Under the pieces are notes generated by a model that saw only the letters and a list, made by a program, of their open reading frames with translations, made no database searches and was not told where the DNA came from. A stretch of DNA of 64,000 nt, taken from the IMG/VR virus record IMGVR_UViG_3300046665_000548, positions 248,001-312,000 of that record. One strand, 5' to 3'. A program made the translations under genes and the position numbers. Within the stretch, counting starts at the first letter, position 1. The number at the start of each line of letters is the position of its first letter. This document shows, one piece after another, positions 3,983-25,585 of the stretch.

Positions 3983-4035
3983 TTTTTACGGTTTCTTCCT
4001 GCAAATGTTTGGTCTGGCTATACTATTACTTGTAG

Positions 4036-4108
4036 CTCGGGAAGTAGGACTCGAACCCACATTTTCTGGAGTCAACATCCAGCATCCTACCAATTAGACG
4101 ATTCCCGA
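4036..4108 (-). tRNA. tRNA-Gln(TTG), atypical (G33, no CCA)
   Basis: TCGGGAA/TTCCCGA acceptor, anticodon arm CTGGA-TGTTGAC-TCCAG, GGTTCGAGTCC; 3' GCTA. Confidence 0.8.
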
Positions 4109-4115
4109 ATAAGAC

Positions 4116-4190
4116 TGGCTGGGGCGGGAGGGATCGAACCTCCGAATGCGGGAATCAAAATCCCGTGCCTTACCGCTTGGCGACGCCCCA
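4116..4190 (-). tRNA. tRNA-Gln(TTG), CCA encoded
   Basis: TGGGGCG acceptor, CGGGA-TTTTGAT-TCCCG, 3' GCCA. Confidence 0.95.
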
Positions 4191-4202
4191 ATAGTCTTAA
4201 AG

Positions 4203-4287
<85 letters not shown>

Positions 4288-4291
4288 GCGG

Positions 4292-4434
4292 TGTCTAAGG
4301 GAGGAATCGAACCTCCGTTGTAGTTGATGCTGTGAGGCTCCTTCGGTTTCTTTCCGGACTTCCGCCGACGATCACGCCACAACTATCAATCTACGCCGGT
4401 TCGCCCGGTGCGTATGCCACTCCGCCACATAGAC
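4292..4434 (-). ncRNA. tRNA-Leu-like RNA with stunted anticodon arm and ~75-nt variable arm
   Basis: GTCTATG/CTTAGAC acceptor, Leu-type D arm GGCGGAGTGGCATACGC, T arm GGAGGTTCGATTCCTCC, inserted stem-loop at 4320-4394. Confidence 0.7.
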
Positions 4435-4436
4435 AA

Positions 4437-4524
4437 TGGTGTGGATACTCGGATTCGAACCGAGACGAGGTTTACCTCGGTAGGTTCTGAGCCTACTGCG
4501 TCTACCAGATTCCGCCATATCCAC
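4437..4524 (-). tRNA. tRNA-Leu(CAG), CCA encoded
   Basis: GTAGG-CTCAGAA-CCTAC, long variable arm, ACCA. Confidence 0.95.
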
Positions 4525-4535
4525 AAACAATATTT

Positions 4536-4621
4536 TGGTGCGCCAAACAGGATTTGAACCTGTACGCTCTTTCGAGCACGGGCCTCTCATGCCCGCGTGT
4601 CTACCCTTCCACCGTCAGCGC
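4536..4621 (-). tRNA. tRNA-Leu(GAG), CCA encoded
   Basis: CGGGC-ATGAGAG-GCCCG, long variable arm, ACCA. Confidence 0.93.
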
Positions 4622-4634
4622 GAGATGTACTTTG

Positions 4635-4705
4635 ATGGAGGCCCTGGATTCGAACCAGAACTAACAGGGTCAGCACCTGTCCTTCTACCGTTAAAGTAGC
4701 CTCCA
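4635..4705 (-). tRNA. tRNA-Gln(CTG), atypical (G33, no CCA, extended acceptor stem)
   Basis: TGGAGGC/GCCTCCA acceptor, ACAGG-TGCTGAC-CCTGT, GGTTCGAATCC. Confidence 0.75.
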
Positions 4706-4731
4706 TCAAAGTACACCAAAGATGAGATTAG

Positions 4732-4804
4732 CTAGGGGAGTAGGGCTCGAACCTACGACCGCCTGAATCAGAATCAGGAGCGCTACCAACTGCGCCATCC
4801 CCCA
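4732..4804 (-). tRNA. tRNA-Gln(CTG), no CCA, extended acceptor stem
   Basis: TGGGGGA/TCCCCTA, CCTGA-TTCTGAT-TCAGG, GGTTCGAGCCC. Confidence 0.9.
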
Positions 4805-4816
4805 GCTAATCTCACC

Positions 4817-5101
4817 TCAAACTTTCACACCTCCTTTCCTCATCTTCTTCAACTCTGCTTTCGATAGTTCTTTTTCCACGATGTATCGCATCGGGTCGCC
4901 GTCTTCGTCGTCAACGACCGAGAATCCGGCCGCTTTGAAAGTCCTTGGGATGTTCACCGAACAGGTGCAGTAATCCCAAATTCTACTGTCGTTCTTCTCG
5001 TAACCGTCCCGAAAGACGACCCGATCTAGACCTCCCACGAGCTTCCCGATTTGTCGGGGCGTCGTGTAGATGTGTTGTCGAAAACCTACGCTGGTGCACA
5101 T
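4817..5101 (-). CDS. hypothetical protein, first gene after the Leu/Gln attenuator
   Basis: MCTSVGFRQH... with GGAGA SD; stop lies just before tRNA-Gln. Confidence 0.7.
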   Translation of the reverse strand: MCTSVGFRQHIYTTPRQIGKLVGGLDRVVFRDGYEKNDSRIWDYCTCSVNIPRTFKAAGFSVVDDEDGDPMRYIVEKELSKAELKKMRKGGVKV

Positions 5102-5117
5102 TGCATTTCTCCAAAAC

Positions 5118-5148
5118 AAAAGGCCCCCAGGATTTCTCCGGGAGCCTT
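5118..5148 (-). terminator. second intrinsic terminator of the Leu/Gln leader
   Basis: AAGGCTCCCGGA-GAAA-TCCTGGGGGCCTTTTG. Confidence 0.7.
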
Positions 5149-5161
5149 ACATGCGAACATG

Positions 5162-5191
5162 AAAAAGGCCCTGCCGGAGTTCCGGAGGGCC
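5162..5191 (-). terminator. attenuator terminator of the Leu/Gln tRNA operon
   Basis: GGCCCT-CCGG-AACT-CCGG-C-AGGGCC-TTTTT; 5' arm complementary to leader segment GAGGGCCAACC. Confidence 0.85.
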
Positions 5192-5219
5192 ACCTTTGGT
5201 TCAGTTGCTAGTCACAGCA

Positions 5220-5282
5220 TCACTGCACGCGGGGTTGGCCCTCGTTGGTAAGTTGCAGTTGCTGGAGTAGGTTCTTGAACAT
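5220..5282 (-). CDS. Leu/Gln-rich attenuator leader peptide MFKNLLQQLQLTNEGQPRVQ
   Basis: Codons 5-11 are CTA CTC CAG CAA CTG CAA CTT; ATG directly after the promoter; followed by antiterminator/terminator. Confidence 0.8.
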   Translation of the reverse strand: MFKNLLQQLQLTNEGQPRVQ

Positions 5283-5287
5283 GGTTT

Positions 5288-5318
5288 TATTTATCTCAGA
5301 CTTATGTTGCGCCGTCAA
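5288..5318 (-). promoter_or_regulatory. promoter of the Leu/Gln leader (TTGACG-N17-GATAAA overlapping TAAATA)
   Basis: Minus strand TTGACG GCGCAACATAAGTCTGA GATAAATA AAACC ATG. Confidence 0.7.
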
Positions 5319-5323
5319 TAAGA

Positions 5324-5355
5324 AAAAACGAGGAGAAGACTTGCTTCTCCTCGTC
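5324..5355 (-). terminator. intrinsic terminator of the candidate structured RNA
   Basis: CGAGGAGAAG-CAAGT-CTTCTCCTCG-TTTTTT. Confidence 0.85.
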
Positions 5356-5606
5356 GTGAGTTACTTTTACCAGCAATACAGCCAAGGCCACCGTGGCAGC
5401 CCACGTCCTCGGTTACGATCCGCCAGACTAGGGGTAACGATCCCCATTCCGGGTGGCGACGAGAAATCCATCCTGTCGCTGTATTGTTGGTAAAAGTAAT
5501 AGAAAGCGGGAGGGCTGCGTTGCGATACATCTGACACGGGCACACTGCCGACTAGCCAAATGCACGACTGCCCAGGTGTTCCCTCCCGCCAGTAGTCTTC
5601 AAAATA
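5330..5606 (-). ncRNA. candidate structured ncRNA of about 280 nt, unknown class
   Basis: Own TAAATA (5613-5618) and terminator; GCGGGAGGG/CCCTCCCGC domain; 22-bp near-perfect stem TTACTTTTACCAACAATACAGC/GCTGTATTGCTGGTAAAAGTAA closing a multibranch loop. Confidence 0.65.
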
Positions 5607-5628
5607 CCAGATTATTTACTGGCGTCAA

Positions 5629-6114
5629 CTAAATCTTTTCGATGGTGAAAGTCAGGTAGGGACCGGAGTCTTCGATATGAGCCTCGTATCCGAACTGGTG
5701 AATTTGAGAGGCGAAACGCTGGAGCAAACGTGAGTAGAGCCCGGCCTTGCCAGTGCCGTCGTCCACTCCGCTCTTCTGTCCGGTGAAGTAGATCACGTCT
5801 GGAGCATGTTCGCCAACGAGATCGCGCAACGCTTGGATGAAGGTCGAGAATACTTTGATGGATGACGATCCCGCAGCGCCGGTTGCTTTGTACGGATCGT
5901 GTCTTGCTGTTGAGGCGAGTTCTGGGGAGGCGCGGTCGGTATCGACGCGGAATTTGCAATCCCAATTTTTCAGATAACGTATGAACACGAATTCCAGCGG
6001 CGTGTCGCCAACCTGCGCTTTGCCGACCCATTTGGAGTCAGTCTTCTGCCAAGTAATCGGAAGACTTTCATTGAAACTTTCATAGAGATCGATGATCGCA
6101 CGCATTTCCATCAT
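5629..6114 (-). CDS. hypothetical, probable virion-internal protein
   Basis: TAAATATCCGC-ATG (motif at 6120-6125); N-terminus MMEMRAIIDLYE. Confidence 0.75.
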   Translation of the reverse strand: MMEMRAIIDLYESFNESLPITWQKTDSKWVGKAQVGDTPLEFVFIRYLKNWDCKFRVDTDRASPELASTARHDPYKATGAAGSSSIKVFSTFIQALRDLVGEHAPDVIYFTGQKSGVDDGTGKAGLYSRLLQRFASQIHQFGYEAHIEDSGPYLTFTIEKI

Positions 6115-6207
6115 GCGGATATTTATTTGAGCAGGCCATGCATGTATTCCTATCACGGGCGTTGATCTTATTGGTGTAAATAAAAGACCTTCTTAACAGG
6201 GAGCAAC

Positions 6208-7011
6208 ATGCTCAAGCGTATCGCGTTTTTTCTTTCATTACTTTTCATATCACCTACGTTTGCAGCATCTCAGCTTGTAAATGACACCTACTCTCCAACA
6301 GTGAAGATTAAGCAGGGCAAAAGCAACGGATCGGGCACAGTTATCTTTTCGTTTGGCCGAACCTACGTACTGACTAATTTTCACGTGGTCAGCACCGTAT
6401 CAGCGAAGGACGATAAAACAACTGACGTTTTGCCCTTCGAGAAGATCGATGTCATCACGTACAAATACGAAAACATCGACAATATCGAAGAGACTACATT
6501 TCAGGGCAAGGTCGTTCTGTTCAACCGGAAGATGGACCTCGCACTAGTTGAGGTTGTTGGTGCGATAGGACTGCCGGTCGCTCGCATCGACTTCAAGATG
6601 AGACCTGATATTGGCGAGAATGTATTCGCGGTGGGTAGTGGCCTCGGACATACGCCATTCATGACGGATGGACTACTAAGCCGCACCAAACCCAATGATG
6701 GATATCCGTACTATCTTTCTACATCTCCGATTGTACCCGGCAATTCCGGTGGCGGTCTTTACATGAAGTGCGGTGACAACCTGAGTCGTTTCTGCCTCAT
6801 TGGTGTTCCATCTCGTGTGCTCATGATCGACAAGGGAGTGCCGATCCCTCACATGGGATTTTCTGTTCGCCTACAGACCGTCGCTAAGTTTCTGCTCGAC
6901 TCGAATTACGAGTTCATCATCAATCCATGGTTGGTCAACAAGACTGCGAGGCCAGTTGTTGATGCGGTTGATGAAGACGAGCCGGAAGCCGACGAAGATG
7001 ATGCCGACTAA
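6208..7011 (+). CDS. trypsin-like (S1) serine protease with signal peptide
   Basis: GSGT, LTNFHVV (His), MDLAL (Asp), PGNSGGGL (Ser); N-terminal hydrophobic signal; TAAATA at 6177 and GGGAG SD. Confidence 0.9.
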   Translation: MLKRIAFFLSLLFISPTFAASQLVNDTYSPTVKIKQGKSNGSGTVIFSFGRTYVLTNFHVVSTVSAKDDKTTDVLPFEKIDVITYKYENIDNIEETTFQGKVVLFNRKMDLALVEVVGAIGLPVARIDFKMRPDIGENVFAVGSGLGHTPFMTDGLLSRTKPNDGYPYYLSTSPIVPGNSGGGLYMKCGDNLSRFCLIGVPSRVLMIDKGVPIPHMGFSVRLQTVAKFLLDSNYEFIINPWLVNKTARPVVDAVDEDEPEADEDDAD

Positions 7012-10214: not shown

Positions 10215-10231
10215 ACGGATATTTATTGCAG

Positions 10232-10318
10232 CGGACAAGGTGGGATTCGAACCCACGGCACCCTTACGGGTGCGGCACGCTTCCAACGTGCTGGATTAAG
10301 CCTCTCTCCCACCTGTCC
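10232..10318 (-). tRNA. tRNA-Ser(GGA), no CCA
   Basis: GCACG-TTGGAAG-CGTGC, long variable arm, discriminator G. Confidence 0.92.
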
Positions 10319-10323
10319 AAGGG

Positions 10324-10415
10324 TGGCGGATGGTGTAGGATTTGAACCCACGGGACCCTTTCGGGTCCGCTCCGCTTCGAACGGAGTGCATTAAGCCAGA
10401 CTCTGCCAACCATCC
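10324..10415 (-). tRNA. tRNA-Ser(CGA), CCA encoded
   Basis: CTCCG-TTCGAAG-CGGAG, long variable arm, GCCA. Confidence 0.95.
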
Positions 10416-10426
10416 TAACTGAATTC

Positions 10427-10532
10427 TTTACGGTGTGGGATTCGAACCCACGGGCGGCGGAGTATAGGTCCATCAGCACCACTCCCCGCTCTATCTTCTG
10501 GAGTCAACCTTAATCCACTCGGTCAACCGTAA
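10427..10532 (-). ncRNA. tRNA-Ser-like RNA with degenerate anticodon arm and enlarged variable arm
   Basis: TTACGGT/ACCGTAA acceptor, D arm GACCGAGTGGATTAAGGT, T arm GTGGGTTCGAATCCCAC, 36-nt arm at 10454-10489. Confidence 0.7.
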
Positions 10533-10538
10533 CGAAAC

Positions 10539-10628
10539 TGGTGGAAACGGTGGGATTCGAACCCACGGAGCCCTTTCGGGCTCGGGACTTTAGCAAAGTC
10601 CTGGGATAAGCCTCTCCCCCACATTTCC
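10539..10628 (-). tRNA. tRNA-Ser(GCT), CCA encoded
   Basis: GGACT-TTGCTAA-AGTCC, long variable arm, ACCA (discriminator A rather than the usual G). Confidence 0.93.
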
Positions 10629-10639
10629 AATGTGCTTTG

Positions 10640-10728
10640 CGGAAGCGGTGGGATTCGAACCCACGGGACCCTTCCGGGTCCTTCGGTTTTCAAGACCGAC
10701 GCGTTCAGCCGGGCTCCGCCACACTTCC
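10640..10728 (-). tRNA. tRNA-Ser(TGA), no CCA, extended acceptor stem
   Basis: TCGGT-CTTGAAA-ACCGA, long variable arm. Confidence 0.93.
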
Positions 10729-12787: not shown

Positions 12788-13639
12788 TTATCCGAGTTGA
12801 AGAAGAGGATAATCGTCTCGGTGGACGATCAGCAGATCGTTGTCGCGATGTTGAATATCCCGTGAGAGCGTTATCTTCGCATCAGTCCACTGGCCACTAT
12901 TCGGATCGGGGGTTAGAAACAAGTACCCCAGCCTCTGGCTGATGCCGACAATTGGGCTCTGGTCCCACGGGGTCTCGGTGCCGCCCGGAATGAATGCCGC
13001 CGTCACTTCTCGTTTCCAAAGACGTGCCAGCCAGATGCCGATGCTACCGCCATCGACCAGATAGTTCTTGAATTGCTTCACGAGCTTCTGCGATTCGACG
13101 CTGTATTCGTCCAGCGGGTCGCGCAGGAGAACGTAGCCTTGCAGCGGAGGCGATGACATCTTTGTGGGGAGCCGTCGCGCCGCCTCGAAATTGGTGATCC
13201 GGTGGCATCCCATCGATCCCGGACGAAAACCGAAAATCTCGCCCGTGTTCACGTCCCCAATATAGGCCGCGACGCATTCTCCCTTGTGAATCAACGCGAT
13301 CATCGTGCCGATGCCATGAGATTGTCCACGCACGAACGCCCGCGTGCCGTCTACCGGATCGATGGTGAAATAGGTTTCGCCGGGCTCGCTTACGCCCTCT
13401 TCCGAGATAATCCCAAAGCTTGGGAAGCATTCCCGGAGGGATCGAACGTAGATGTCCTGGGCCTTAAGATCGGCCGAGGTCAATACGTCGTTCATTTCAC
13501 CTTCGACATCCGTGTAGCCTTGTTTGGCGTGGGATTCGAAAGAGATACGTTCAGCCTGGATCACGCCGAGCGCACGGCGTACCAGTTCTTTCATGATGAT
13601 GCCAACTGCGTGGCCGTTGAGCTTTTCGTCAAAAATCAT
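12788..13639 (-). CDS. inositol monophosphatase / CysQ (PAP phosphatase) family protein
   Basis: DVLTSADLKAQ, IISEE, IDPVDGT metal-binding motifs. Confidence 0.85.
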   Translation of the reverse strand: MIFDEKLNGHAVGIIMKELVRRALGVIQAERISFESHAKQGYTDVEGEMNDVLTSADLKAQDIYVRSLRECFPSFGIISEEGVSEPGETYFTIDPVDGTRAFVRGQSHGIGTMIALIHKGECVAAYIGDVNTGEIFGFRPGSMGCHRITNFEAARRLPTKMSSPPLQGYVLLRDPLDEYSVESQKLVKQFKNYLVDGGSIGIWLARLWKREVTAAFIPGGTETPWDQSPIVGISQRLGYLFLTPDPNSGQWTDAKITLSRDIQHRDNDLLIVHRDDYPLLQLG

Positions 13640-13667
13640 TCTATGCCTCTTTACTGAGGTATAGCAG

Positions 13668-14051
13668 TTACTTTAGGTTCTGCAAGTAGTTCCGTGCCGC
13701 CTGATGTACGGACACGTCCGGGGTTCTAGTGCAGTAATTCGCGACAATATCCAGAACGGTCTGTTCTGCAACCTTGTCCAAGTAATTTTTACCCGTCATA
13801 AGCACGGAAATTTCGTTGGCTCCTGTCGCGAAACCGAGGATGTACTGACGGATGTCTGGTTTCGTACGGTTCGCCAGATAGGTGCGACATGAAGTTGTGG
13901 AACCCACACCCATTGCGTGGGCTGCGAACGTCGGCAAAAGGAAGAAGATTGTCAGAGCGGCAATAACGATAGCGATACGCCAAAAATGAACGAGACGAAG
14001 CATTGTTCTCCAGGAAATTTGAGTATGGGACATACTAGGCGATTCGCTCAT
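13668..14051 (-). CDS. exported HdeA/Rap1a-like protein
   Basis: Signal-like hydrophobic segment, SCxxY...YILGF...C...P pattern. Confidence 0.5.
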   Translation of the reverse strand: MSESPSMSHTQISWRTMLRLVHFWRIAIVIAALTIFFLLPTFAAHAMGVGSTTSCRTYLANRTKPDIRQYILGFATGANEISVLMTGKNYLDKVAEQTVLDIVANYCTRTPDVSVHQAARNYLQNLK

Positions 14052-14083
14052 CTCTTGGCTCTAAAAAGAGTTATCACTTCTCC

Positions 14084-14089
14084 TAAATA
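14084..14089 (+). promoter_or_regulatory. late promoter motif TAAATA
   Basis: TAAATA-ATCG-ATG, no room for an SD. Confidence 0.65.
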
Positions 14090-14093
14090 ATCG

Positions 14094-15707
14094 ATGGCCT
14101 ACATTCTTGATTCGCGCGGCACTGGCGGCGCTATTATTACACTTGGAGAGACACTGACGTTCCCGGTCGCCTTCGGCAGACCGGAGCTTGATGCGCAGCC
14201 TCCAGTGGGATCACTGCGCTACAACCCAGAAACAACCGAACTGGAACTCTATCGTTCGGACGGTCTGGGTGGCCACGAATGGCGTATTGTTGAACGCATC
14301 TCGCTAGATACTTCCACTATCTTGCCAAAAACGGGCGGTACTGTTCTTGGTAATATGACTATGACGGGTGACTCCCGTATATTCCTGCCATCTGGCAGCA
14401 TCAGCGCCCCATCGCTGTCTTTTGTGGGCGCGACACAGACCGGTTTCTCGACAGACGAGAATAACGTTCTGCTTACATCCGTAAACGGCGTTCAGGTCGC
14501 CAAATTCGACATCAATCTTGCGACCCTCAACGTGCCTATGCAGGCGACTACAGCGACTTTCGAAACCATCACCGCCGCGACGCTAAACGTAGCAAGATTG
14601 AATACCTACCTGCCTCGGGAAATTTCAGGGTTCTTCCCAGGTCCGTTTGAGGCTGGACAGGTTATTTTCAGACAGGTCATCGCTCATAGAGTTTTAATCA
14701 GCGACGGCTGGGGTGGCTCGGTCGCGTTCGTTCAAGGGATGCCTCTCGGTATCGGGGGCGCGTCCTTTAGAATCGACAAAATTTCTAGCAACATTCGAAC
14801 GACAATCGGCGTTCTTTCATTCGCGGCGGTGTCGGTGTTTGGGACCTTTTGGTCTCCGCCTGGAGGAGAGTTTCAACTCGACGGTGGTGACATCATTGAG
14901 ATCGTCGTCGCGCAGCCGGATGTCATAACGGGGCTGTCATTCTCACTACTGACGCGTGTTCCTGTCTCGGTGAACGTTGCTCCGACCGACATCAGCATTA
15001 GTCCGAGCGTCGTTGAAGAACGCGCCCGCCCAGGCACTGTGGTTGGAATCATTTCAGTATCCGACACGGACAGCACCACCTTCAATTATCAAATGCTTGA
15101 CTCGGCAGATGATCGCTTTGCTATTATTGGTAATCAAATCGTAGTAGGCGATAACCTACTGGATTGGAGCATCAATTCGTCGCATTCCATTAGAATTCGC
15201 GCTATTGATGAAGACGGTCTGGCTTACGACAAGACATTCTCCATCACCGTACGCAACATCGTTGACATGTCCGCGTATGATCCGATCCGCCCTGTGGTTT
15301 CTACCAGTACAGTTGATGCTTTGGCGACACTAACGTCTGCTCAAAGCATCGGGTTGACTACATGGGAAGCATCTGCGGCTGCTATAGCATCGGTATCCGC
15401 TTCTATTCAGCTTCCACCTATTTCTGCCGCTTCTCTCGGTATCGCGCTTGTTAGCACCGCAATCACTCAGGACGCCGGAGACGTAACATCAATCGCCAGC
15501 GTATCCGATATCGTAATGATGACTGGTAATATGACCACGACCAACATTTCTGCGGAGTCTGAGGCTAATATATACGTTGAAATGAACGCCATCGAAACGC
15601 TCGAAAATTTTGATGGTGATGGAGAAAGTGACGCCATAGTAGAGGCAGATACCGTAACGTTGATCTCAGGAGTGGGTACGAACGGACTTGCTGAGTTGCC
15701 GACCTGA
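14094..15707 (+). CDS. virion fibre/structural protein with cadherin-like domain (paralog 1)
   Basis: APTDISI...GTVVGIISVSDTD...RFAIIGNQ...IRAIDEDG...FSITV; N-terminus shared with 15798 and 20953. Confidence 0.75.
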   Translation: MAYILDSRGTGGAIITLGETLTFPVAFGRPELDAQPPVGSLRYNPETTELELYRSDGLGGHEWRIVERISLDTSTILPKTGGTVLGNMTMTGDSRIFLPSGSISAPSLSFVGATQTGFSTDENNVLLTSVNGVQVAKFDINLATLNVPMQATTATFETITAATLNVARLNTYLPREISGFFPGPFEAGQVIFRQVIAHRVLISDGWGGSVAFVQGMPLGIGGASFRIDKISSNIRTTIGVLSFAAVSVFGTFWSPPGGEFQLDGGDIIEIVVAQPDVITGLSFSLLTRVPVSVNVAPTDISISPSVVEERARPGTVVGIISVSDTDSTTFNYQMLDSADDRFAIIGNQIVVGDNLLDWSINSSHSIRIRAIDEDGLAYDKTFSITVRNIVDMSAYDPIRPVVSTSTVDALATLTSAQSIGLTTWEASAAAIASVSASIQLPPISAASLGIALVSTAITQDAGDVTSIASVSDIVMMTGNMTTTNISAESEANIYVEMNAIETLENFDGDGESDAIVEADTVTLISGVGTNGLAELPT

Positions 15708-15797
15708 TTCGCTCACCGGCCATAGATATTATCAGTCTGGTACTGGTTATGCATATCAAACCGAACGGCTAAATACCCACACACGTGTGGAAGTATA

Positions 15798-18700
15798 ATG
15801 GCCGAAATTATTGATGCCCGCGCTTCGGGTGGAGCTATCTTACTACTTGGCGACGCGCTCACACTGCCGATCTCATCGGCGGTGAGTACAAGCGCGAAGC
15901 CGCTTGGATCGATTCGCTTCAATCCAGACCTCCAAGAGATAGAGGTCTATCGTTTGGCCGACGCGTCATACGCTTGGAAGACGCTGGACCGCTTTGAGTT
16001 AGATACTGCCGGTTTCTATCCTGCGAGCGGTGGGCCGATGAACGGTGGCATCTCGTTTGGGAATAGCGGAAATCTATACGCCACCTACGGAACTGCGCTA
16101 GAACCGGCGATTTCTTTCGCTTCTAACACCAATACTGGTATTTCTGGTACCAATCTGGGTAATATTCAATTTTCCGCGAAGGGTAGTCTTACGTTCAAGG
16201 CCAGCCAAAGCGCAGTGGAGTTTACTACATCTCTCCAGGCACCTGCTGCGACCATTACTACGGTCACCACGACGACCCTAAACGCGACCTCGGTCAATAC
16301 GTTTGTTCCGAGAGAGATTTCATTCTCATACATCGGTGGTTTTACACCTCTTAAGGTCATATACCGGTTTATCGTTGCACGTCGTCTGCTTGTGCCTCAG
16401 TATTGGGCTGGGTCCATTGCGACTCTTGGAACCCCAGCGTCTTCGACAGCTAGATTTCAAATTCGTCGTGTTCGAAGCAACATCAGTGATACTATCGGGA
16501 CGATAACGTTCGAGGCAGATTCTACTATCGGTACGTTTTCTGCCTCGGACTCTTTTACCCTGCATGGTGCAGATCGTCTTGAAATTGTCGCGCCGCCAAT
16601 CTCAAATGACGACTACTCAGACATCAGTGTTACGTTGGCGATGGCTACGCCGCTGTCTGCCGATCTATCTCCGATAGATATCACCTTCGCACCATCCAAC
16701 GTGCTGACAGGAAACTTCTGGCCGCAAGGTTCGGTTGTCGGCATGGTATCGACCATTGATACGGATAGTACCAATTTCAACTATGCTCTTCTCGATACTG
16801 CGAAGCAGCAGTTTCAGATTGTTGGAAATATCATTCAGGTCGGATCGGCTCCGTTCAAGGGTGGTCAGTTTTCGGTCCAAGCCACCGACGACGATGGTCT
16901 GACAATTACAAAGAATTTCTCCGTAACTGTTCCTCCTCGGGCGGGAACGGGTGCAGCAACTGCCGGGCCGTATATCTCTGGCGCGTTTTCTTTTACTACC
17001 GTTTCTGCGTCAATCGTCAGAGAGATCAATCCGTTCCCGTCAACATCCTCCGGTAAGGTATCGATTGTCGGCGCGGCGGAGGACAGTCTCGGTCTGAGCA
17101 TCATAACTGCCGCCATGGGACCAATCGTGAAACTTTCGCCGTTCACGACGACCTCGACGTTCCTCCTTGGCCTTTATGATCATTCGTCCTTTATCGGTGA
17201 ATTCGTTAACACAATCGCTGGCGATGCTCCGGCTGGCCTGACTGCCGCCTCGGTTATTAATGCGATTGTGGCAAGCGGAAGCGGCTTTGTAACTGTAGGC
17301 TCTGACGCCAACTCCAATATCGAAAACTTTGAACCATCATCGCTATCCAATACCTTTATCGTTTCGCCTGCTAACAACTCTATGCTCGCAGTGGTTTCTA
17401 CAAGCACAAGCGCATCGGTGGTGTCGAAGGCGAGCGCCAGTAACACTATCGGTGCGTTCAGCCAATCCATCATGTTCGATGCTCTGGCGCATCTGTCCGC
17501 AAGTTCTGTCCTCGCGCCGATTTCTGCAAGCGGAACTGGATTTGTGAATGCGAAGGCCAATTCAAGCGCGACCATCAGTAATTTTGCTGCTAGCGGAACA
17601 GCTACAAATACTGCCTCATTGACACCTGTCACTATGTTTGACGCAAGTCCTGCGCTGAACGCTGATGACTCCAACGCACTTACGGCGTTTCGTGTCATCA
17701 GCAATGTTACCGCTGCTAATTTGTCGCAAATGCGGGTAACATTGCAAACAGGTTCAACAGGATCACTGTCGCTCAAACAGGCATCCATTGCCAAGTGGGA
17801 CAGCAGTTCGCCCTCGGAGAGCGGGTCACAGCTAGCTAATACGTTAGCGTCGCCCATTCGGCTAACCTACGGCGCGCATTTCGGTGCATTGGCTAGTGCG
17901 CCTGGGTTCCTAGCTTCGGATTGGCTGGATGTTACATCGTTGAACCTAGCGCCCGGTGACAAGGTAGTCGTCAGTTACGACACCAAGGATACCGGATCGC
18001 AGAAATACAACAACTCGTCCACGAATGCCCGCACGTTTTACAAGCCGGGTTCGGCGGAATCGGCGGATGTTTCCGATATGGCTGGGTTGGGCTTCACCTC
18101 ACTGCCGACCATCAATTACGCTGTCGCCAAGATCGAAACCCGTAACGGGCTTGATTATACGACAGCCGTTGATATTCCGTTGACCTTCAACGATCCGATG
18201 TTCACCGGAATGACAGAACTGACAGCCACGGTGGGTTTGACGAGCGGTCAGACGTTATCGCATACCAGTATTATCGAACAAAGCGGCGGTTCTACGATCT
18301 TCGCACCCGGCGCTAACACGATCTCTTACTGCCGTGTTAGTTCCCGAGAATGCGTTCGTATCACAGACGGCGTTCTGAACATCGATCATTGCTATTTCGA
18401 AGCCTTCGGTATCGATGACGATCACGCGGACGTATTGCAAGCGTACTCTCCGGGCACGCGCGGTGCAGCAGTGACGATCAAAAACTCGTATATTCGCGCG
18501 GGTACCGTAGCTGCTACGGCTGGCATGTTCGTTGCGGATAATTGGGGCGGCAGCATCACGTTTGAAGATGTTGTCGTTCACGGTGGCCCATTCGGCGTGC
18601 GCTTGATGGCGGACGGTGCAGGTGCCGATCTAACTATTTCGTTCAAGAATGTCTATTTCGTTGTGCCGTTCGGTGCGGCACCATTCTCATTTGAAAATTA

Positions 18701-18803
18701 CGGCGGCGGTGTGCACACAATCACGCAATGGGTTAACGTGCGTGCTGCCAGCATCATGGACGATAAGCTCATCATAGGCGACCTGATACCTCAGCCGTTA
18801 TAA
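15798..18803 (+). CDS. virion fibre/structural protein with cadherin-like domain and C-terminal beta-helix-like region (paralog 2)
   Basis: Shared N-terminus; cadherin-like module; C-terminal IDDDHADVLQ...ITFEDVVVHGG; TAAATA at 15770. Confidence 0.75.
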   Translation: MAEIIDARASGGAILLLGDALTLPISSAVSTSAKPLGSIRFNPDLQEIEVYRLADASYAWKTLDRFELDTAGFYPASGGPMNGGISFGNSGNLYATYGTALEPAISFASNTNTGISGTNLGNIQFSAKGSLTFKASQSAVEFTTSLQAPAATITTVTTTTLNATSVNTFVPREISFSYIGGFTPLKVIYRFIVARRLLVPQYWAGSIATLGTPASSTARFQIRRVRSNISDTIGTITFEADSTIGTFSASDSFTLHGADRLEIVAPPISNDDYSDISVTLAMATPLSADLSPIDITFAPSNVLTGNFWPQGSVVGMVSTIDTDSTNFNYALLDTAKQQFQIVGNIIQVGSAPFKGGQFSVQATDDDGLTITKNFSVTVPPRAGTGAATAGPYISGAFSFTTVSASIVREINPFPSTSSGKVSIVGAAEDSLGLSIITAAMGPIVKLSPFTTTSTFLLGLYDHSSFIGEFVNTIAGDAPAGLTAASVINAIVASGSGFVTVGSDANSNIENFEPSSLSNTFIVSPANNSMLAVVSTSTSASVVSKASASNTIGAFSQSIMFDALAHLSASSVLAPISASGTGFVNAKANSSATISNFAASGTATNTASLTPVTMFDASPALNADDSNALTAFRVISNVTAANLSQMRVTLQTGSTGSLSLKQASIAKWDSSSPSESGSQLANTLASPIRLTYGAHFGALASAPGFLASDWLDVTSLNLAPGDKVVVSYDTKDTGSQKYNNSSTNARTFYKPGSAESADVSDMAGLGFTSLPTINYAVAKIETRNGLDYTTAVDIPLTFNDPMFTGMTELTATVGLTSGQTLSHTSIIEQSGGSTIFAPGANTISYCRVSSRECVRITDGVLNIDHCYFEAFGIDDDHADVLQAYSPGTRGAAVTIKNSYIRAGTVAATAGMFVADNWGGSITFEDVVVHGGPFGVRLMADGAGADLTISFKNVYFVVPFGAAPFSFENYGGGVHTITQWVNVRAASIMDDKLIIGDLIPQPL

Positions 18804-18846
18804 TCGCGAGACACTAATAAATAGAGCGAGTTTCTGGGAGTAAACA

Positions 18847-19644
18847 ATGTCTATCACCACACTTGCAATCAAGGATGGCCTCGGTGCCAATCGTGTAATT
18901 ACCGCCATCGACGTGGCTGGAGATGGCTCTGGTCCATTTCTCCCGGTTCATGGCCTAGCTAATTCAGTCGGAACGGCCATCGACCCTGCTACAAGCGCTA
19001 AGCAGGATTCCTTAATTGCACTGCTGCCAACTAGCATCGGTCAAAAAACGACTGCTGCATCGCTATCAGTTACTCTTTCTTCGAACCACAGCGTTATAGC
19101 GGTTAGCGCGACCGCTCTTCCGCTTCCGTCAGGTGCAGCTACAAGCGCCAAACAGGACAGCCTATTTGCTCTTTTCCCGACCAGCATTGGTCAGAAAGCC
19201 GCTGCTGGCTCACTATCCGTGGTCATTGCATCTGACCAAGGTATAATCGGCGTCTCAGCTTCTAGTCTTCCGCTACCAACCGGTGCAGCAACTGCCGCAA
19301 AGCAAGACACTCTTCTTGCTGCGGTACAGGCAGGAATTCCCGTAACGGCAACGCCAAGTGCAGATCAAGACCCAATCTTCGATCACACTAATGGCACCAA
19401 AACGAGCGTAACTGCATCGGCTACGGTTATCACGCCTCCTACTGGATGTAGATTTGTTCGTATTCACACTGATGTAGATGTTTTCGTGAACACGGCTGGA
19501 AACGCAGCAGTGGATGACGGAACATCGATCCGAATTGTTGCAAACTCTTCAGAAGTCATTCCGGTAGTAGCTGGAGTTGCGGTTAGGGCACTTTCATCAA
19601 GCGGAACGGCTATTGTTCGCTGCACGCCGCTAAAGGTCCGGTAA
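18847..19644 (+). CDS. virion structural protein with ATSAKQD repeats
   Basis: Three AT(S/A)AKQD repeats; TAAATA at 18818 and GGGAG SD. Confidence 0.7.
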   Translation: MSITTLAIKDGLGANRVITAIDVAGDGSGPFLPVHGLANSVGTAIDPATSAKQDSLIALLPTSIGQKTTAASLSVTLSSNHSVIAVSATALPLPSGAATSAKQDSLFALFPTSIGQKAAAGSLSVVIASDQGIIGVSASSLPLPTGAATAAKQDTLLAAVQAGIPVTATPSADQDPIFDHTNGTKTSVTASATVITPPTGCRFVRIHTDVDVFVNTAGNAAVDDGTSIRIVANSSEVIPVVAGVAVRALSSSGTAIVRCTPLKVR

Positions 19645-20885
19645 TGATTCTCGGACCTGCATCGTTAAAGCTGGTCGGTGCGCCAAGAGCGTTTTCGCAT
19701 GTTGGTCGCGCTTTTCTTCCACCTACAATACCGACCCTACTGCCGCTGAATAGTCGCATCGTTTATTTTGGCGACAGTATAACGGCAAACCGAGGTTTTC
19801 CCGGTTATGCTGATTGGTCTCAGTTCACTTCTCGTGGTAAATTTTACGGCAAAGCAGTAGGATCGAACGGCTTAGGGCCAACTGGCTGGAACCAAGGTGT
19901 TGTGGGTAATACCACAGCAATGCTAATTACTCGCATACAGAACGTTATCGATGAAGCTCCAAAGCTGGTTGTTCTATTAGTCGGAACTAACGATATTGGA
20001 GCGGGTGGTCTTTCGGCGTCAACTATCACGACTAACCTGCGCACGATTATTAATGCCCTTAAAGCTGCGGGTATCAAGGTTCTGGTTATCACCATTCTGC
20101 CGCGTATTGCCGCAGGTTGGGGTCAGACGCAGAACGACACAAAGACTGCGGTCAACAACTGGATCAAAGCACAGACCGATATCGATTGGCTCGATAGTGA
20201 ACTGTATGTCACTAATCCGGCAACGCAACTGCAAGCCGATGGTACCCATCCAAATGGTGCAGGCGCTCAACCGCTAGGTATAGCTGTTGGCAACAAGATA
20301 ATGACTTATGCCGCCGCGACAGATATTCTTTACGATCCGTTGGCTGCCGCACCTTCTGAAAACCTTTATCTCAATCCGTTCTTTACGGGCAGCACTACAA
20401 TTGCCAGTGGGCAGGTCGCAACTTCTTGGAGCTACTTCCCTGCGGCTAACGGTTTGACAAGAGTTAACAGCAAAACTACTCTGGATGGTAGCGCGGCACA
20501 AAAGCTGGTTCTTTCCGGCACTGCTACTGCCAACGTAGCTGACAACTTTAGTCAGAACATCACTCCACCCGGTGGTTTGGCTGGTGAATTGTACGAAGCA
20601 TGGATGGAAGTTCAGTTCAACCGTATCACCGGTATAGCTGGATTCGCTCTGAGCGCAGGCACTAATACGCAAGGCTCCGTCGCCATGAGTATAACTTCGC
20701 AGGATACTAGCGGTGGTCTGACTGTTCCGTTCACGGGTGTTCTACGTGCGCCCCCATCTGTGTTAGCTACGAATGGAGCTACTTTTAGTTCGCGAATGTC
20801 ACTTATTCCAATTAATGGCGCAGTAGTTGACGCTGAAATGATTATCACCCGTGCAGGTTATCGCAAAGTACCTGCTTTACAATAG
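19644..20885 (+). CDS. SGNH/GDSL hydrolase, probably virion-associated
   Basis: FGDSIT, NQGVVG, GTNDI, DGTHPN blocks. Confidence 0.85.
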   Translation: MILGPASLKLVGAPRAFSHVGRAFLPPTIPTLLPLNSRIVYFGDSITANRGFPGYADWSQFTSRGKFYGKAVGSNGLGPTGWNQGVVGNTTAMLITRIQNVIDEAPKLVVLLVGTNDIGAGGLSASTITTNLRTIINALKAAGIKVLVITILPRIAAGWGQTQNDTKTAVNNWIKAQTDIDWLDSELYVTNPATQLQADGTHPNGAGAQPLGIAVGNKIMTYAAATDILYDPLAAAPSENLYLNPFFTGSTTIASGQVATSWSYFPAANGLTRVNSKTTLDGSAAQKLVLSGTATANVADNFSQNITPPGGLAGELYEAWMEVQFNRITGIAGFALSAGTNTQGSVAMSITSQDTSGGLTVPFTGVLRAPPSVLATNGATFSSRMSLIPINGAVVDAEMIITRAGYRKVPALQ

Positions 20886-20952
20886 TACATTAAGCACACC
20901 TTTCGCGACACTAGAGATTACGTCTAAATACATCAGATAGTTCTGGTGAATA

Positions 20953-23799
20953 ATGGGCAATATTCTTGATGGTCGCGGAAAAGGCGGCGTCGTATTTCTT
21001 GGTGATTACGTCACGCTTCCGACAGCCTCGGGAGCGCCCGATGGTCTTCTGCCTCCGCTCGGCTCCATCCGCTTCAATCCTTTGATTGAAGAGGTTGAGG
21101 TTTTCCGAGACGATCAGAAAAACGGATACGAGTGGCGTCTTCTCAACGCCCAGACATTCGACATCGCTAAGTTCTATTCGAAGAATGGCGGGCCTATTTC
21201 TGGTAACATGACGCTTTCCAGTGCCCTCCTGGCATCGGCGGGGTCACAGAATTCACCATCGATATCCTTTACCTTCAGTCAAGGCACTGGTCTCTCGACC
21301 GCTGGCGGAGCGCTTCGTTTGAGCGCTAACGGCTCTCTAGTTGCCACGATGACGACCAACAGCATTACGATTACTCCTAACGTTGTGGGTCATGCGGCTT
21401 CTTTCGGTACCCTAAATGCGACAACAATCAACGCTGAGGTTGTCAGTCCCGTCCCGTTTGAGAGTGCCTTCTTTGCTCCTGGAGCGTTTAGAGATGGCGC
21501 GCTCATTCATCGAATGCCAGCCACACACGTTCTGAGTTTCCCATCTGCCCTTGCCGGATCACAGGCTTTCGCTGGTGTGGCTCCACTCAGCAACGCGTCG
21601 GTTACAATAACGAAGGTTGGTTCAAGTGGCGTTCAGGTTGATGTCGGCTCAATAACATGGTCTGCTGGAAATCGAGTTGGCCTATTCACGTGTCCCGATC
21701 CGTTCACTATGATCGCGGGCGAGTCTCTTGTGTTCGTCACAAGTAATTCTTTTGATGATCTTATCAGCGACATCTCGGTGACCATCGCAGGGCAATCAAT
21801 CTACAGACTTGATAACGCACCAACAGACATCGTACTCAGCGGACCACAAGCGGTTGACGAATACTCCGCACCGGGAACATACGTCGCGACGATTAACGCC
21901 ATCGACGCGGATGATACTCAGTTCAGTTACAGCCTTATCGGTCAAAACTCCAAAGACAGACGATTTGATGTCGTTGGCAATCAGATCGTGTGGAGCACGC
22001 TCACGCGCAGTACGGCGTCAAGCGGTTGGCCTGGAGTCTATCGACCTGTCACGGTGCGAGCGACCGATCCATACGGCAAGTACATACAGAAGACCTTCCA
22101 GATTTTGGAGAAGGACGCTATTTTTGGTGTCCGGGATGGCGACATTAACGTACTCGGGGTGATCTCGAATATGTATAATTTCGGTATCGTAGCCTCGGTT
22201 GGTCCTGTCTCGCTAGCTTCCGGTGAGAATTCGTTCCCCGTTCCGACTCAAGAAGCCACTGCGAATTCGTTCTTGTCTGTCCTTCAGACATTGACTATCC
22301 CAGCCATTGATACCGAAGGCTCTGGTTTCGTTACAGTTGCAAGCGCCAATACGTCGCTCGTCGGTGATGTTCTGTCTGATACTGGCGGCACGATTGAAAA
22401 CCTCGGCGTGGCGGCAGACGACATTGATCAATTCACGTCTGATATGAATTTCGCCATCTACACGGCGGCTTCCGCAGGTCAGTCGGTGGACGAATTTTCC
22501 ATCGATGGTTCCGCCAACGGTTTGGCGTCATCCGCCACGACAATGGCCCTGCCAGACTTTACCGGCACATCGAGCGCACTGCTTATCCTCACAGCAACTG
22601 GTGTGGATGAAATCGGTCCGTTCTTGGCAGCAGAGTACATCGGTTCTGGAAGCAATCAGATTGCCGCTATTGCGATTACGTCAAGCCAAGGCTACGTCGA
22701 TCTCATCAAAGGTCAAAGCGCAAGAAACATTGGAGATGTTTGGTCATCGGCCTCTACTACCACGGCGCTCGCGCAAATCGTTGCGAACACGTCGGCGGAT
22801 CAATTCGTCTCTGTTACTGAAGAAGACACCATTGGCGGCCTAATCGGCGTATCCGTATTTGATAATTTTGATGATACCGGAGTTGGTCTAATCCAGGTCT
22901 CAAGTTCATCTGTAACACTAGCTCCAAACTTTGCAGCTACGTCGTCGGGTGAAATTTCTAACGAAGCCCGCGCCACGAGGGGTATTGGGCTGTTCAGTAA
23001 TACGTCCTCGGTTCAAAGTCTCGTCGCGCTTGTCGGCACCGACACTGTTGATGCGTTCACGCAATTTGCGGATCAAAAAACGCGCGGCCTCGCGACCAAT
23101 AGTATCGGTATGTTCTCGTTTCCCGTTCGCGCCAACTACGCTTCTTTCTCAGAAACGCTTTTCAATCCGTCATCTTCTGTCAACATCACTACAAACGCTG
23201 TCGTAGAGCCACTAAACGGGGCACAGAGCGCCGCCCGTATCAACGAAACCAATGATAGTGCTCCCGATTATCACAGTGTTACTAACAACTCCTGGTCTTC
23301 CGGTCTTATTACGAAGACGCCAGTTACTTTCTCGATTTACGGCCAATCAACCGGTTCAAATGCTCGCGGTGTGCTGACCAGAATCGTCGGTAGCAATGGA
23401 TCGTCTATGTATATCGCGTACGATCTCACCAACGGTACAGTTGTTATTTCTGGTGCCTCTACGGGCTCATTTAGTTACAGCACCACCACGGTGACCGCCG
23501 TCAATGGTTGGTATCGCATCTCTTTGACAGGAAACTTCGATGGTCCGGCCGAAAGCCTGAGCGGCGAATTTTACATCATCAAACCAGATGCTCCGCAGCC
23601 TAATCTTTACCAAGGCTCTGTAGGAAACGGTATCAGTCTTTGGGGTGCACAACTCGAATACACGACTTCCCCAAGCGTATATCTCCCGGCTCAAGGCAGT
23701 GGGTCTTCATACGATTATATCTTGCGCTCGATTAGCCAAGCAACGATCTCGGAGAATATTACTCCGTTCAGTATTGTGGCAACCGCTCACGCAGTCTGA
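20953..23799 (+). CDS. virion fibre/structural protein with cadherin-like domain (paralog 3)
   Basis: Shared N-terminus; APTDIVL...DADD...RFDVVGNQ; C-terminal NGWYRIS...LWGAQLE; TAAATA at 20925. Confidence 0.75.
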   Translation: MGNILDGRGKGGVVFLGDYVTLPTASGAPDGLLPPLGSIRFNPLIEEVEVFRDDQKNGYEWRLLNAQTFDIAKFYSKNGGPISGNMTLSSALLASAGSQNSPSISFTFSQGTGLSTAGGALRLSANGSLVATMTTNSITITPNVVGHAASFGTLNATTINAEVVSPVPFESAFFAPGAFRDGALIHRMPATHVLSFPSALAGSQAFAGVAPLSNASVTITKVGSSGVQVDVGSITWSAGNRVGLFTCPDPFTMIAGESLVFVTSNSFDDLISDISVTIAGQSIYRLDNAPTDIVLSGPQAVDEYSAPGTYVATINAIDADDTQFSYSLIGQNSKDRRFDVVGNQIVWSTLTRSTASSGWPGVYRPVTVRATDPYGKYIQKTFQILEKDAIFGVRDGDINVLGVISNMYNFGIVASVGPVSLASGENSFPVPTQEATANSFLSVLQTLTIPAIDTEGSGFVTVASANTSLVGDVLSDTGGTIENLGVAADDIDQFTSDMNFAIYTAASAGQSVDEFSIDGSANGLASSATTMALPDFTGTSSALLILTATGVDEIGPFLAAEYIGSGSNQIAAIAITSSQGYVDLIKGQSARNIGDVWSSASTTTALAQIVANTSADQFVSVTEEDTIGGLIGVSVFDNFDDTGVGLIQVSSSSVTLAPNFAATSSGEISNEARATRGIGLFSNTSSVQSLVALVGTDTVDAFTQFADQKTRGLATNSIGMFSFPVRANYASFSETLFNPSSSVNITTNAVVEPLNGAQSAARINETNDSAPDYHSVTNNSWSSGLITKTPVTFSIYGQSTGSNARGVLTRIVGSNGSSMYIAYDLTNGTVVISGASTGSFSYSTTTVTAVNGWYRISLTGNFDGPAESLSGEFYIIKPDAPQPNLYQGSVGNGISLWGAQLEYTTSPSVYLPAQGSGSSYDYILRSISQATISENITPFSIVATAHAV

Positions 23800-23839
23800 T
23801 CTCCGATAAATACCCGAAACAAATTGACGGGTGTTTAGT

Positions 23840-24208
23840 ATGTTCGGTATTACTACTTATATCTATATTGCTATTGGTGTTGCCATCGCAGGTCTTGCTG
23901 GTGCGCTCTGGTTTGTAAATCATGAGAACGGAAAGCTTCATGAACAGATCGGCCAGCAAGAGATCGTGGTGAAAGAGTTGAAGGCTACCGTTACTGCTTT
24001 GCAAGAAGACGCGAAGCGCACGAAAGAAAACACGGAGACCCTGTTTAACAACACGAACAAGCTTCGTGATGATTTCAATAAGGCAACTCGTGTGATCATC
24101 GACCATAACTTTGGGTCAATTGGCTCAAAACATCCCCGCATGCTGGAGGACCGCGCTAACAAGGCAACGCGCGACCTCCTGAAGCGACTTGAGGAGTCAT
24201 CACGATGA
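23840..24208 (+). CDS. probable inner-membrane spanin (Rz-like)
   Basis: One N-terminal TM segment then coiled coil; overlaps a lipoprotein gene; TAAATA at 23807. Confidence 0.65.
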   Translation: MFGITTYIYIAIGVAIAGLAGALWFVNHENGKLHEQIGQQEIVVKELKATVTALQEDAKRTKENTETLFNNTNKLRDDFNKATRVIIDHNFGSIGSKHPRMLEDRANKATRDLLKRLEESSR

Positions 24209-24573
24209 AACTGATCCAAGCCCTGGTGATATTAGCTCCATTGTTTTTGGCCGGATGCCAGACCACCTATACGCCGATTTCGGTTGGTCTTGATGCTCCT
24301 GCGATCCCGAAAGCAGCCCCTATCACGACACATCCCTTCCAGTGGAAGGTCTACAACCAAGCTGATCTTCAGAAGCTTTTGATCGAGTTGCAGAACCGTC
24401 CCAAGACTGATTACGCGATTTTCGTGCTGACGCCAGATGGCTATAAAGCATTATCGCTGAACGTGCTTGAGATGGAACGTTACATTAAGGAACAACGTGA
24501 AATCATTGCCTATCTTACTAATACATTGGAAGGCCGGGCTCCGGCTCCGGAGATCAAGAAGCGCGGAAAATGA
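24205..24573 (+). CDS. probable outer-membrane spanin lipoprotein (Rz1-like)
   Basis: Lipobox LFLAGC, Pro-rich segment after the Cys. Confidence 0.65.
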   Translation: MKLIQALVILAPLFLAGCQTTYTPISVGLDAPAIPKAAPITTHPFQWKVYNQADLQKLLIELQNRPKTDYAIFVLTPDGYKALSLNVLEMERYIKEQREIIAYLTNTLEGRAPAPEIKKRGK

Positions 24574-25421: not shown

Positions 25422-25585
25422 TTCCACGGTATTTCACCGCTTTCGCTCTAGTCGGTCTTTTTATTGGACTGGCTCTTCGTAAGCGCCCCTATAAGCAGAC
25501 GCTCCGTCAGACCAATTCAGGCCAAGTGGCGATGCCCATTCCAGAGCCAATTCGTCGCGAAGACGGGCGCTATTCCAGCCACTAA
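25418..25585 (+). CDS. small membrane protein
   Basis: ATGA overlap; one hydrophobic segment. Confidence 0.5.
   Translation: MIPRYFTAFALVGLFIGLALRKRPYKQTLRQTNSGQVAMPIPEPIRREDGRYSSH

Follow-up and report, generated by a model that had tools for sequence, protein, structure and literature searches.

The locus and its relatives

A stretch of minus-strand DNA upstream of a phage tRNA array was read in an earlier note, made from the sequence alone, as one structured RNA of ~280 nt in two domains, with its own promoter and terminator and with repeated loops that might sponge or scaffold a protein. Our analysis confirms this reading in part. The 64,000-nt window that we analyzed spans bases 248001-312000 of an IMG/VR virus record of 607,744 bp that is judged complete. 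The record represents a huge phage, whose 608-kb genome carries 57 tRNA genes along with a permuted tmRNA. Features and their coordinates are given in Table 1.

On the minus strand, the flagged stretch is followed in order by a short leader ORF, two terminators, a 94-aa ORF and a tRNA array, and the earlier note had placed the RNA directly upstream of a tRNA attenuator, which we read as a probable leader-peptide attenuator of the Gln/Leu tRNAs. Two small proteins without a Pfam match, a trypsin-like peptidase and cell-wall hydrolase-like proteins are encoded around it.

Word searches with the neighboring proteins yielded two relatives that cover the locus: L017 (L017/L019, a Logan contig; neighbor protein 80% and peptidase 63% identical) and L018 (a 204-kb JGI contig; peptidase 52% identical). 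Full-length comparisons are of three sequences, namely the window, L017 and L018. A further relative, L027, starts inside the leader ORF and stops short of the RNA. Close strains are represented by alignments of DNA contigs from public runs (X1, X2 and X4) over window positions 4000-7000, and they match the window at ~94% over 4976-5358 and at ~95% over 5504-5628. Other searches were negative. A scan of IMG/VR with the loop motif returned only unrelated coding tandem repeats, the flanking proteins have no relatives in IMG/VR, and blastn against INPHARED phages gave no match. Scans by pattern of contigs from viruses, metagenomes and genomes produced nothing or chance coding matches (L020, L025 and L026). 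DNA polymerase relatives reach only 45-50% identity, and the hairpin described below is missing from three of their records; peptidase homologues at 35-38% identity occur in unrelated phages without synteny. Within the collections searched, only a narrow clade has the hairpin (window, X1, X2, X4, L017 and L018).

Guide or template RNAs (retron msr-msd, omega RNA, bridge RNA, crRNA/tracrRNA) were rejected because the adjacent gene that they require is missing: no reverse transcriptase, TnpB/IscB, IS110 recombinase or Cas gene lies beside the RNA in the window, L017 or L018.

Table 1. Features of the RNA locus and the downstream tRNA operon (window positions unless stated otherwise).
Feature	Position	Strand	Basis or remark
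Gene 5' of the flagged RNA	5629-6156		161-175 aa, no function assigned
Flagged stretch	5324-5618	minus	
P_D1, -35 box TTGACG	5628-5623	minus	consensus scan; TTGAC invariant in window, L017 and L018
P_D1, -10 box TATTTT, with TGG before it	5606-5601	minus	consensus scan
Domain 1, irregular hairpin	5589-5506	minus	fold and conservation in relatives
Helix P1, basal stem, GC-rich, 9 bp	5589-5581 / 5514-5506	minus	
5-nt bulge of domain 1	5580-5576	minus	varies at 2 of 5 positions
Helix P2 with invariant internal loops, and helix P3	5575-5560 / 5530-5515	minus	
Variable tip of domain 1	5559-5531	minus	
U-rich tail after P1, UUUCUAUUACUUUUA	5505-5491	minus	read from sequence; possible weak termination point
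Domain 2, structured cassette closed by 22-bp stem	5499-5361	minus	z = -5.3
Closing stem of domain 2	5499-5478 / 5382-5361	minus	22 bp, one mismatch; 95% complementary
11-nt loop motifs of domain 2	5443-5433 and 5421-5411	minus	direct repeat, one mismatch
Intrinsic terminator, 12 pairs	5355-5327, T run 5326-5321	minus	consensus scan; pairing probability 0.98
Terminator arms	5328-5338 / 5344-5354	minus	
Second promoter P2, TTGACG and TGA-GATAAA	5318-5313 and 5298-5290	minus	boxes invariant in three genomes
Leader ORF MFKNLLQQLQLTNEGQPRVQ, 20 codons	5282-5220	minus	
Terminator T1	5191-5162	minus	narrower bounds 5191-5167
Terminator T2	5148-5112	minus	narrower bounds 5148-5120
94-aa ORF	4817-5101	minus	no function assigned; between T2 and first tRNA
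tRNA Gln/Leu array, seven genes	4035-4804		
Other tRNA arrays with leaders	149234, 343310, 523925, 136940	plus	outside window
Other tRNA arrays with leaders	231678, 237900	minus	outside window

The flagged stretch is strongly structured and matches no known family

The 277-nt minus-strand RNA has a folding energy of -126.4 kcal/mol (z = -6.6), which none of 200 shuffled sequences equaled. When the two domains were folded separately, domain 1 gave z = -3.9 and domain 2 z = -5.3. The sequence elements named in the earlier note were all recovered at the positions in Table 1, namely the 9-bp closing stem of domain 1 (GCGGGAGGG/CCCTCCCGC), the 22-bp stem with one mismatch that closes domain 2, the two near-identical loops inside it, and the terminator hairpin with its T run.

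No match at gathering score was obtained with the Rfam 15 covariance models (those of RNase P, tmRNA, SRP, 6S, T-box, riboswitches, Y RNA, pRNA, GOLLD/ROOL and known sRNAs among them) inside 5324-5618, and no tRNA or tmRNA was called there, in agreement with the remark that RNase P, tmRNA and SRP signatures are lacking. A permissive scan at E <= 10, in which the domains were also scanned singly, gave terminator-like or chance matches of 13-19 bits, compared with thresholds of 45-80. SRP/4.5S RNA (no GGAA-loop motif, no Rfam match), a T-box (no T-box sequence, no Rfam match) and an integron attC-like site (paired RYYYAAC/GTTRRRY boxes missing) were rejected. We found no account of this phage RNA in the literature or in Rfam.

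We also considered whether the stretch is a small protein gene, either the 76-codon ORF at 5545-5315 or an ORF on the opposite strand. Open frames are present, but the ORFs across the region belong to no Pfam or PHROG family, the frame crosses the terminator, and the region they cover is deleted or replaced in relatives, with no gene called over the matching region of L017. We regard the chance of a protein gene as negligible, and the earlier statement that there is no credible ORF holds.

A conserved irregular hairpin occupies the first third of the RNA

Conservation is limited to the first third of the flagged RNA, at odds with the proposal of a single ~280-nt unit. The arms of domain 1 are identical to those of L017 at 48 of 50 positions and to those of L018 at 47 of 50, and domain 1 is ~95% identical in run X1. 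Identity is spread over both strands of the hairpin. The 5' strand of P1 matches at 9/9 positions in L017 and 8/9 in L018, its 3' strand at 9/9 in both, and each of the two core strands, CUGGGC.GUCGU.CAU and UGU.UCGCAACGCAG, at 15/16 in either relative. The tip is free to change: it measures 38 nt in the window versus 4 nt in L017 and L018, and it is identical at only 1-2 of 6-8 positions. Overall hairpin length ranges from 61 to 86 nt across genomes. This pattern suggests that domain 1 is under strong purifying selection.

The inner part of the hairpin differs from the one first proposed. The pairing ACAC-GGGCA/TGCCC-GTGT of the earlier note has its 3' half in the tip segment that is missing from L017 and L018, so it is not the conserved fold; the inner pairing that is both conserved and of minimum energy joins GUGCAU.. 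with ..AUGUAU. With the structure as we defined it, 98.6% of cells in the three genomes are paired, versus 29-55% when the partners are slid. P3 shows one double compensatory change (U-A to C-G) and four one-sided changes. This covariation is suggestive of a helix, though not statistically decisive: in one shuffling control, 165 of 500 shuffles reached the observed score, with only three full sequences to compare. In P1, covariation is lacking, and one pair of L018 is an A-C mismatch. G-U pairs favor folding of the minus strand in the window and L017, whereas in L018 the opposite strand folds slightly better (-25.1 versus -22.8), the A-C of P1 being a G-U there.

A search with a covariance model of domain 1 found a single copy in the 608-kb genome and no copy in three partial records of distant relatives. 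Domain 1 contains no repeated loops.

The hairpin follows a promoter-like site of conserved position

A consensus scan of the flagged region returned one promoter-like site, TTGACG-16-TATTTT at 5628-5601, which we call P_D1. Over three genomes its consensus reads TTGAC followed by G or A, 16 nt, TAnnTn, and then 10-11 nt to P1. The boxes and their distances are kept while the sequence between them is not: spacer identity is 6/16 with L017 and 4/16 with L018, and the linker between the -10 box and P1 is identical at 2/11 and 1/10 positions, respectively. The TAAATA (5618-5613) that the earlier note took for a promoter box falls within the non-conserved spacer. Transcription is predicted to start ~3-4 nt before the hairpin, and P_D1 is presumably the active promoter of a small RNA. 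The locus thus has a predicted promoter of its own at a conserved position, as an independent RNA gene should. It has a predicted terminator of its own as well, namely the hairpin at 5355-5327 in the window and P1 plus UUUUUCC in L018.

This terminator-like end raises the possibility that the hairpin is simply a terminator or insulator that ends the upstream gene and leaves promoter P2 and the attenuator in control, the match to a promoter being due to chance. A GC-rich stem is indeed followed by Us, and a co-directional gene ends 35-40 nt before the RNA in the window and L017. The U tract is uneven among genomes, however, being good in L018 (UUUUUCC), partial in the window and poor in L017. 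A plain terminator also needs neither invariant internal loops nor arms that are 94-96% identical amid neighbors at chance level. In L018, there is no co-directional gene upstream, but the hairpin and the -35/-10 spacing are kept; promoter and hairpin persist there with nothing else to transcribe, which favors an RNA product over a terminator of the upstream gene. We therefore consider a plain terminator improbable.

The segment behind the hairpin is exchanged among relatives

Domain 2 behaves very differently from domain 1. In L018, domain 2 and its terminator are absent, and P1 is followed by UUUUUCC and then by the next promoter. In L017, it is replaced by an unrelated module of ~108 nt with a long closing stem (z = -4.2), after which there is only a U-rich stretch. 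Close strains keep domain 1 (~95%) and the terminator (~94%) but not the sequence in between. In X1, X2 and X4, the alignment ends at the junctions 5358/5359 and 5503/5504, and the 180-250 nt beyond are unalignable; the terminator at 5355-5327 is kept in all three, as the alignments reach 5358, and is missing in L017 and L018. The 125-kb contig of X2 carries 459 nt in place of the 144 nt of the window, and only 5371-5460 is recognizable there (at least 80%). Cassette length varies: L018 has none (0 nt), L017 has ~135 nt, the window 145 nt and close strains ~450 nt. Its borders (5359-5503) are sharp; one coincides with the hairpin end plus UU, and the other lies 3 nt ahead of the terminator stem. 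No ORF was found in the cassettes of the window or L017. Domain 2 and its arms are single copy in the 608-kb genome, and a miniature inverted-repeat transposable element or other repeat family was rejected on this basis.

The earlier note had placed the function of the RNA in exactly this segment. It proposed a two-domain RNA of ~280 nt whose repeated loops would sponge or scaffold a protein. In the form considered here, these loops or the GGA motifs of domain 2 would bind a protein such as CsrA/RsmA, or an enzyme that reads a tRNA anticodon loop. Both 7-nt loops of domain 2 read AUCGU(U/A)A, which amounts to U33 plus a CGU 'anticodon', and the domain folds strongly. The 11-nt repeat is only weakly beyond chance, since 23 of 500 shuffles contained one as good, and the second repeated loop sits on a 3-bp stem with a pairing probability of 0.67. 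The GGA count is more unusual: domain 2 and the terminator contain 7 GGA motifs in 180 nt, some of them in loops or junctions, a number matched or exceeded in 5 of 500 shuffles. Part of the cassette (5371-5460) is also retained in X2, as noted above. Against these points, the repeated loops lie in the non-conserved part of the RNA and the GGA motifs are not kept in relatives: domain 2 is absent from L018, unrelated in L017, and unalignable in X1 and X4 even though their flanks are ~94-95% identical. No CsrA domain is encoded in the phage genome and, to our knowledge, the Alphaproteobacteria, the host group hinted at by other features (see below), mostly lack CsrA. With domain 2 absent or replaced in relatives, a sponge resting on repeated loops is unsupported, and we rate it as very improbable; the GGA excess barely keeps the idea alive, and for the lineage of the window only. 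The reading of the locus as a structured non-coding RNA with its own promoter and without a known family, which the same note offered, is a reasonable one.

Probable leader-peptide attenuators precede this and other tRNA arrays

The region downstream of the RNA is nearly invariant. The leader ORF, T1 and T2 hardly differ among four genomes (window, L017, L018 and L027), with the leader ORF, which is also present in L027, identical at 59/60 and 61/63 nt in relatives. The predicted start of promoter P2 coincides with the ATG of the leader ORF, which would make its transcript leaderless. Leu and Gln codons in the leader (CUA, CUC, CUG, CUU, CAG and CAA) are read by the five anticodon species of the array (UAG, GAG, CAG, CUG and UUG), and GAGGGCCA inside the leader ORF can pair with the 5' arm of T1. 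Positions 5220-5318 together with T1 and T2 are likely to constitute a ribosome-mediated attenuator of the phage tRNA operon. The 94-aa ORF lies between T2 and the first tRNA and so would be controlled by the attenuator as well. The window, L017 and L027 have this ORF; L018 lacks it, and T2 directly precedes the tRNAs there.

A genome scan revealed the same design before at least six further tRNA arrays: TTGACn...TATAAATA, an ATG mostly 3-7 nt further on (one leader is longer), a short ORF and a terminator. The leader ORFs are enriched in the amino acids of their own array's tRNAs, as illustrated by VTTTVVIITTV before Ile/Thr/Val tRNAs, NRNNSNN before Asn tRNAs, HQHSHH before His tRNAs, DEREED before Asp/Glu tRNAs, YPMPCYP before Tyr/Pro/Met/Cys tRNAs, and LFNKRFWRRVR before Phe/Leu/Trp/Arg/Lys tRNAs. 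The Ser tRNA array at 10231-10728 directly follows coding sequence and lacks a comparable element. At least seven such attenuators thus appear to control tRNA arrays. We found no description in the literature of leader-peptide control of tRNA genes, and to us these genome-wide attenuators look more interesting than the RNA itself.

The relation of the hairpin to this operon bears on its function. No domain-1-like element lies upstream of the six other leader-controlled arrays, so the attenuators do not generally include the hairpin. In a transcript running on from P_D1, the leader ORF would have no ribosome-binding site, and the untranslated leader would fold into T1, so the tRNA array is probably not fed by P_D1. 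A base-pairing sRNA directed against the leader or T1 was rejected, as its sole stretch of complementarity is tied up in the 9-bp GC stem, and there is no conserved single-stranded seed.

The main rival to an independent RNA gene is nevertheless a cis-acting one. The hairpin could be a regulated terminator or antitermination site, at which P_D1 transcripts would stop by default (at the hairpin, the cassette terminator, T1 and T2) and at which a phage or host factor bound to the internal loops would allow read-through past the attenuator into the tRNA Gln/Leu operon. Its position fits, for in all three genomes the hairpin stands beside a promoter and before three to four terminators and a tRNA array; P1 plus UUUUU in L018 resembles a terminator, and invariant internal loops would suit a protein site. 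On the other hand, promoter P2 is strong, separate and directly downstream, so that the operon needs no P_D1, the element is missing at the six other leader-controlled arrays, and the U tract is not preserved in L017. The phage genome encodes no Phage_antitermQ and no NusG domain or paralogue, which is weak evidence against this model. We judge a regulated terminator unlikely, while treating it as the leading alternative.

A proposed conserved small-RNA gene with a replaceable 3' cassette

We hypothesize that the locus is a conserved small-RNA gene with a swappable 3' cassette, and that its core acts through binding a protein. To this statement as a whole we assign a probability of roughly 0.4; the architecture alone, a conserved hairpin RNA element followed by a non-conserved cassette, appears very probable. 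The core would consist of a sigma-70-type promoter and the irregular hairpin of 61-86 nt, with its GC-rich 9-bp base and the Us behind it. L018 would represent the simplest case, in which P1 and UUUUU form the sole terminator and yield an RNA of ~75 nt. In the window, the 145-nt domain 2 and a canonical terminator are interposed between the hairpin and the next promoter, and the predicted product would be ~270 nt long, possibly with a second one of ~95 nt if the U-rich tail behind P1 acts as a weak stop. Domain 2 would be a dispensable 3' extension that is exchanged rapidly.

Two lines of reasoning bear on this hypothesis. First, constraint falls on both helix strands and on the mismatched internal loops, whereas the tip can vary and conserved single-stranded stretches are missing. 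Together these features suggest recognition of the folded RNA by a protein; the RNA would act as a folded object and not by base-pairing, a mechanism in which our own confidence is low. Second, the whole cassette of hairpin, leader and tRNAs is unusually conserved, and recent exchange could explain part of this. The chance-level spacers argue against recent exchange.

We considered two other roles for the hairpin. As a processing or stability element, its helix of ~25 bp would serve as an RNase III-type site or, as a 5' hairpin, would protect the cassette that follows, and the ~450-nt cassette of close strains could hold a small gene. In length and internal loops the helix may be likened to phage RNase III sites, it begins 3-4 nt from the predicted 5' end, and the cassette of X2 measures 459 nt. 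L018, however, has the promoter and hairpin without any cassette to protect, and the cassettes of the window and L017 contain no ORF, so we view this role as highly doubtful. In a more speculative extension of the small-RNA hypothesis, which we also think improbable, domain 1 would be a protein-binding 'handle' and the cassette an exchangeable effector RNA, such as a decoy or aptamer against host factors, in an arms race with the host. Different huge-phage lineages would then plug different structured RNAs behind the same handle, and the two anticodon-loop-like hairpins of the window would be one such payload.

The non-coding RNAs of huge phages are almost unexplored. Comparison with relatives has turned a guess from a single sequence into a defined object, with a core of ~61-86 nt, a predicted promoter and a replaceable cassette, and has removed a false lead, since conservation does not extend to the repeated loops. 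Should a protein of the host or the phage prove to bind the core, the latter would represent a new RNA family, from phages with a near-complete translation toolkit.

Comparison with known RNAs

Phage lambda provides two small RNAs of similar layout: oop RNA (77 nt, antisense) and the '6S' RNA from pR'-tR' (~194 nt), a by-product of Q antitermination. The RNA described here resembles them in having its own sigma-70-type promoter (a predicted one in our case), a length of <100-300 nt, a hairpin-plus-Us end and no ORF, and in lying just upstream of a regulated operon. It differs from oop in that, as far as the sequence tells, no opposite-strand transcription is apparent, from '6S' in that the phage has no Q homologue, and from both in that the RNA body is under strong sequence constraint. 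A parallel in domain organization is phi29 pRNA, found in small phi29-like phages, which is transcribed from its own promoter and combines an essential, conserved 5' domain with a 3' domain that is dispensable and poorly conserved. Our candidate is likewise a phage RNA with its own predicted promoter, a conserved 5' domain and a variable 3' domain. Unlike pRNA, which has an Rfam family, it has no Rfam match, and it shows no conserved loop-loop complementarity, as its tip varies.

The stable RNAs C and D of T4 (species 1 and 2) lie in a tRNA cluster and are co-transcribed and processed with the tRNAs. They resemble the present RNA in their description as small, stable, structured phage RNAs without an assigned function that adjoin tRNA genes; here, in contrast, the RNA has its own predicted promoter, and up to four terminators and a second promoter intervene before the tRNAs. 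CsrB and RsmZ share with domain 2 the GGA motifs and, in the form of its two repeated hairpin loops, repetition, but the repeats of domain 2 are few, the module is not conserved, and the phage lacks CsrA. Lambda nut/boxB, HK022 put and the RAT sites of BglG/SacY may be compared with domain 1 as conserved imperfect hairpins located after a promoter and before terminators. They differ from it in that no Q- or NusG-type partner was found here, the hairpin is itself terminator-like in L018, and it is missing at the genome's other attenuator-controlled tRNA arrays.

Further observations on the genome

The 57 tRNA genes cover nearly all amino acids and include two amber-suppressor-type tRNAs (anticodon CUA), with tRNA(CUA) at 4091-4256 of the window. 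Between tRNA-Leu(UAG) and tRNA-Leu(CAG) there is a tRNA-like gene of ~145 nt (~4290-4434, minus strand), with a homologous stretch in L018 at 5043-5209. Its acceptor stem, D arm and T arm are good, but the anticodon region holds an insert of ~57-80 nt. ARAGORN reports it with the intron option only, as a tRNA-Leu(AAG) whose unusually placed intron measures 57 nt. The gene may encode a tRNA with an intron or one that is aberrant in some other way.

The permuted tmRNA is located at 576377-576796 of the record and encodes the tag ANDNVAVSEYALAA. Permuted tmRNAs are typical of Alphaproteobacteria, and the relative L018 carries a gene for an HWE-type histidine kinase; together these features hint at an alphaproteobacterial host.

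Within window positions ~13000-26000, genes lie mostly on the minus strand up to ~13-14 kb and mostly on the plus strand beyond, and the cumulative GC skew has its minimum near 24-26 kb. A primer RNA of a replication origin was rejected as an explanation of the flagged RNA, as the skew turns near 24-26 kb, away from it. The orientation switch and the skew minimum could be signs of a replication origin or of a boundary between modules.
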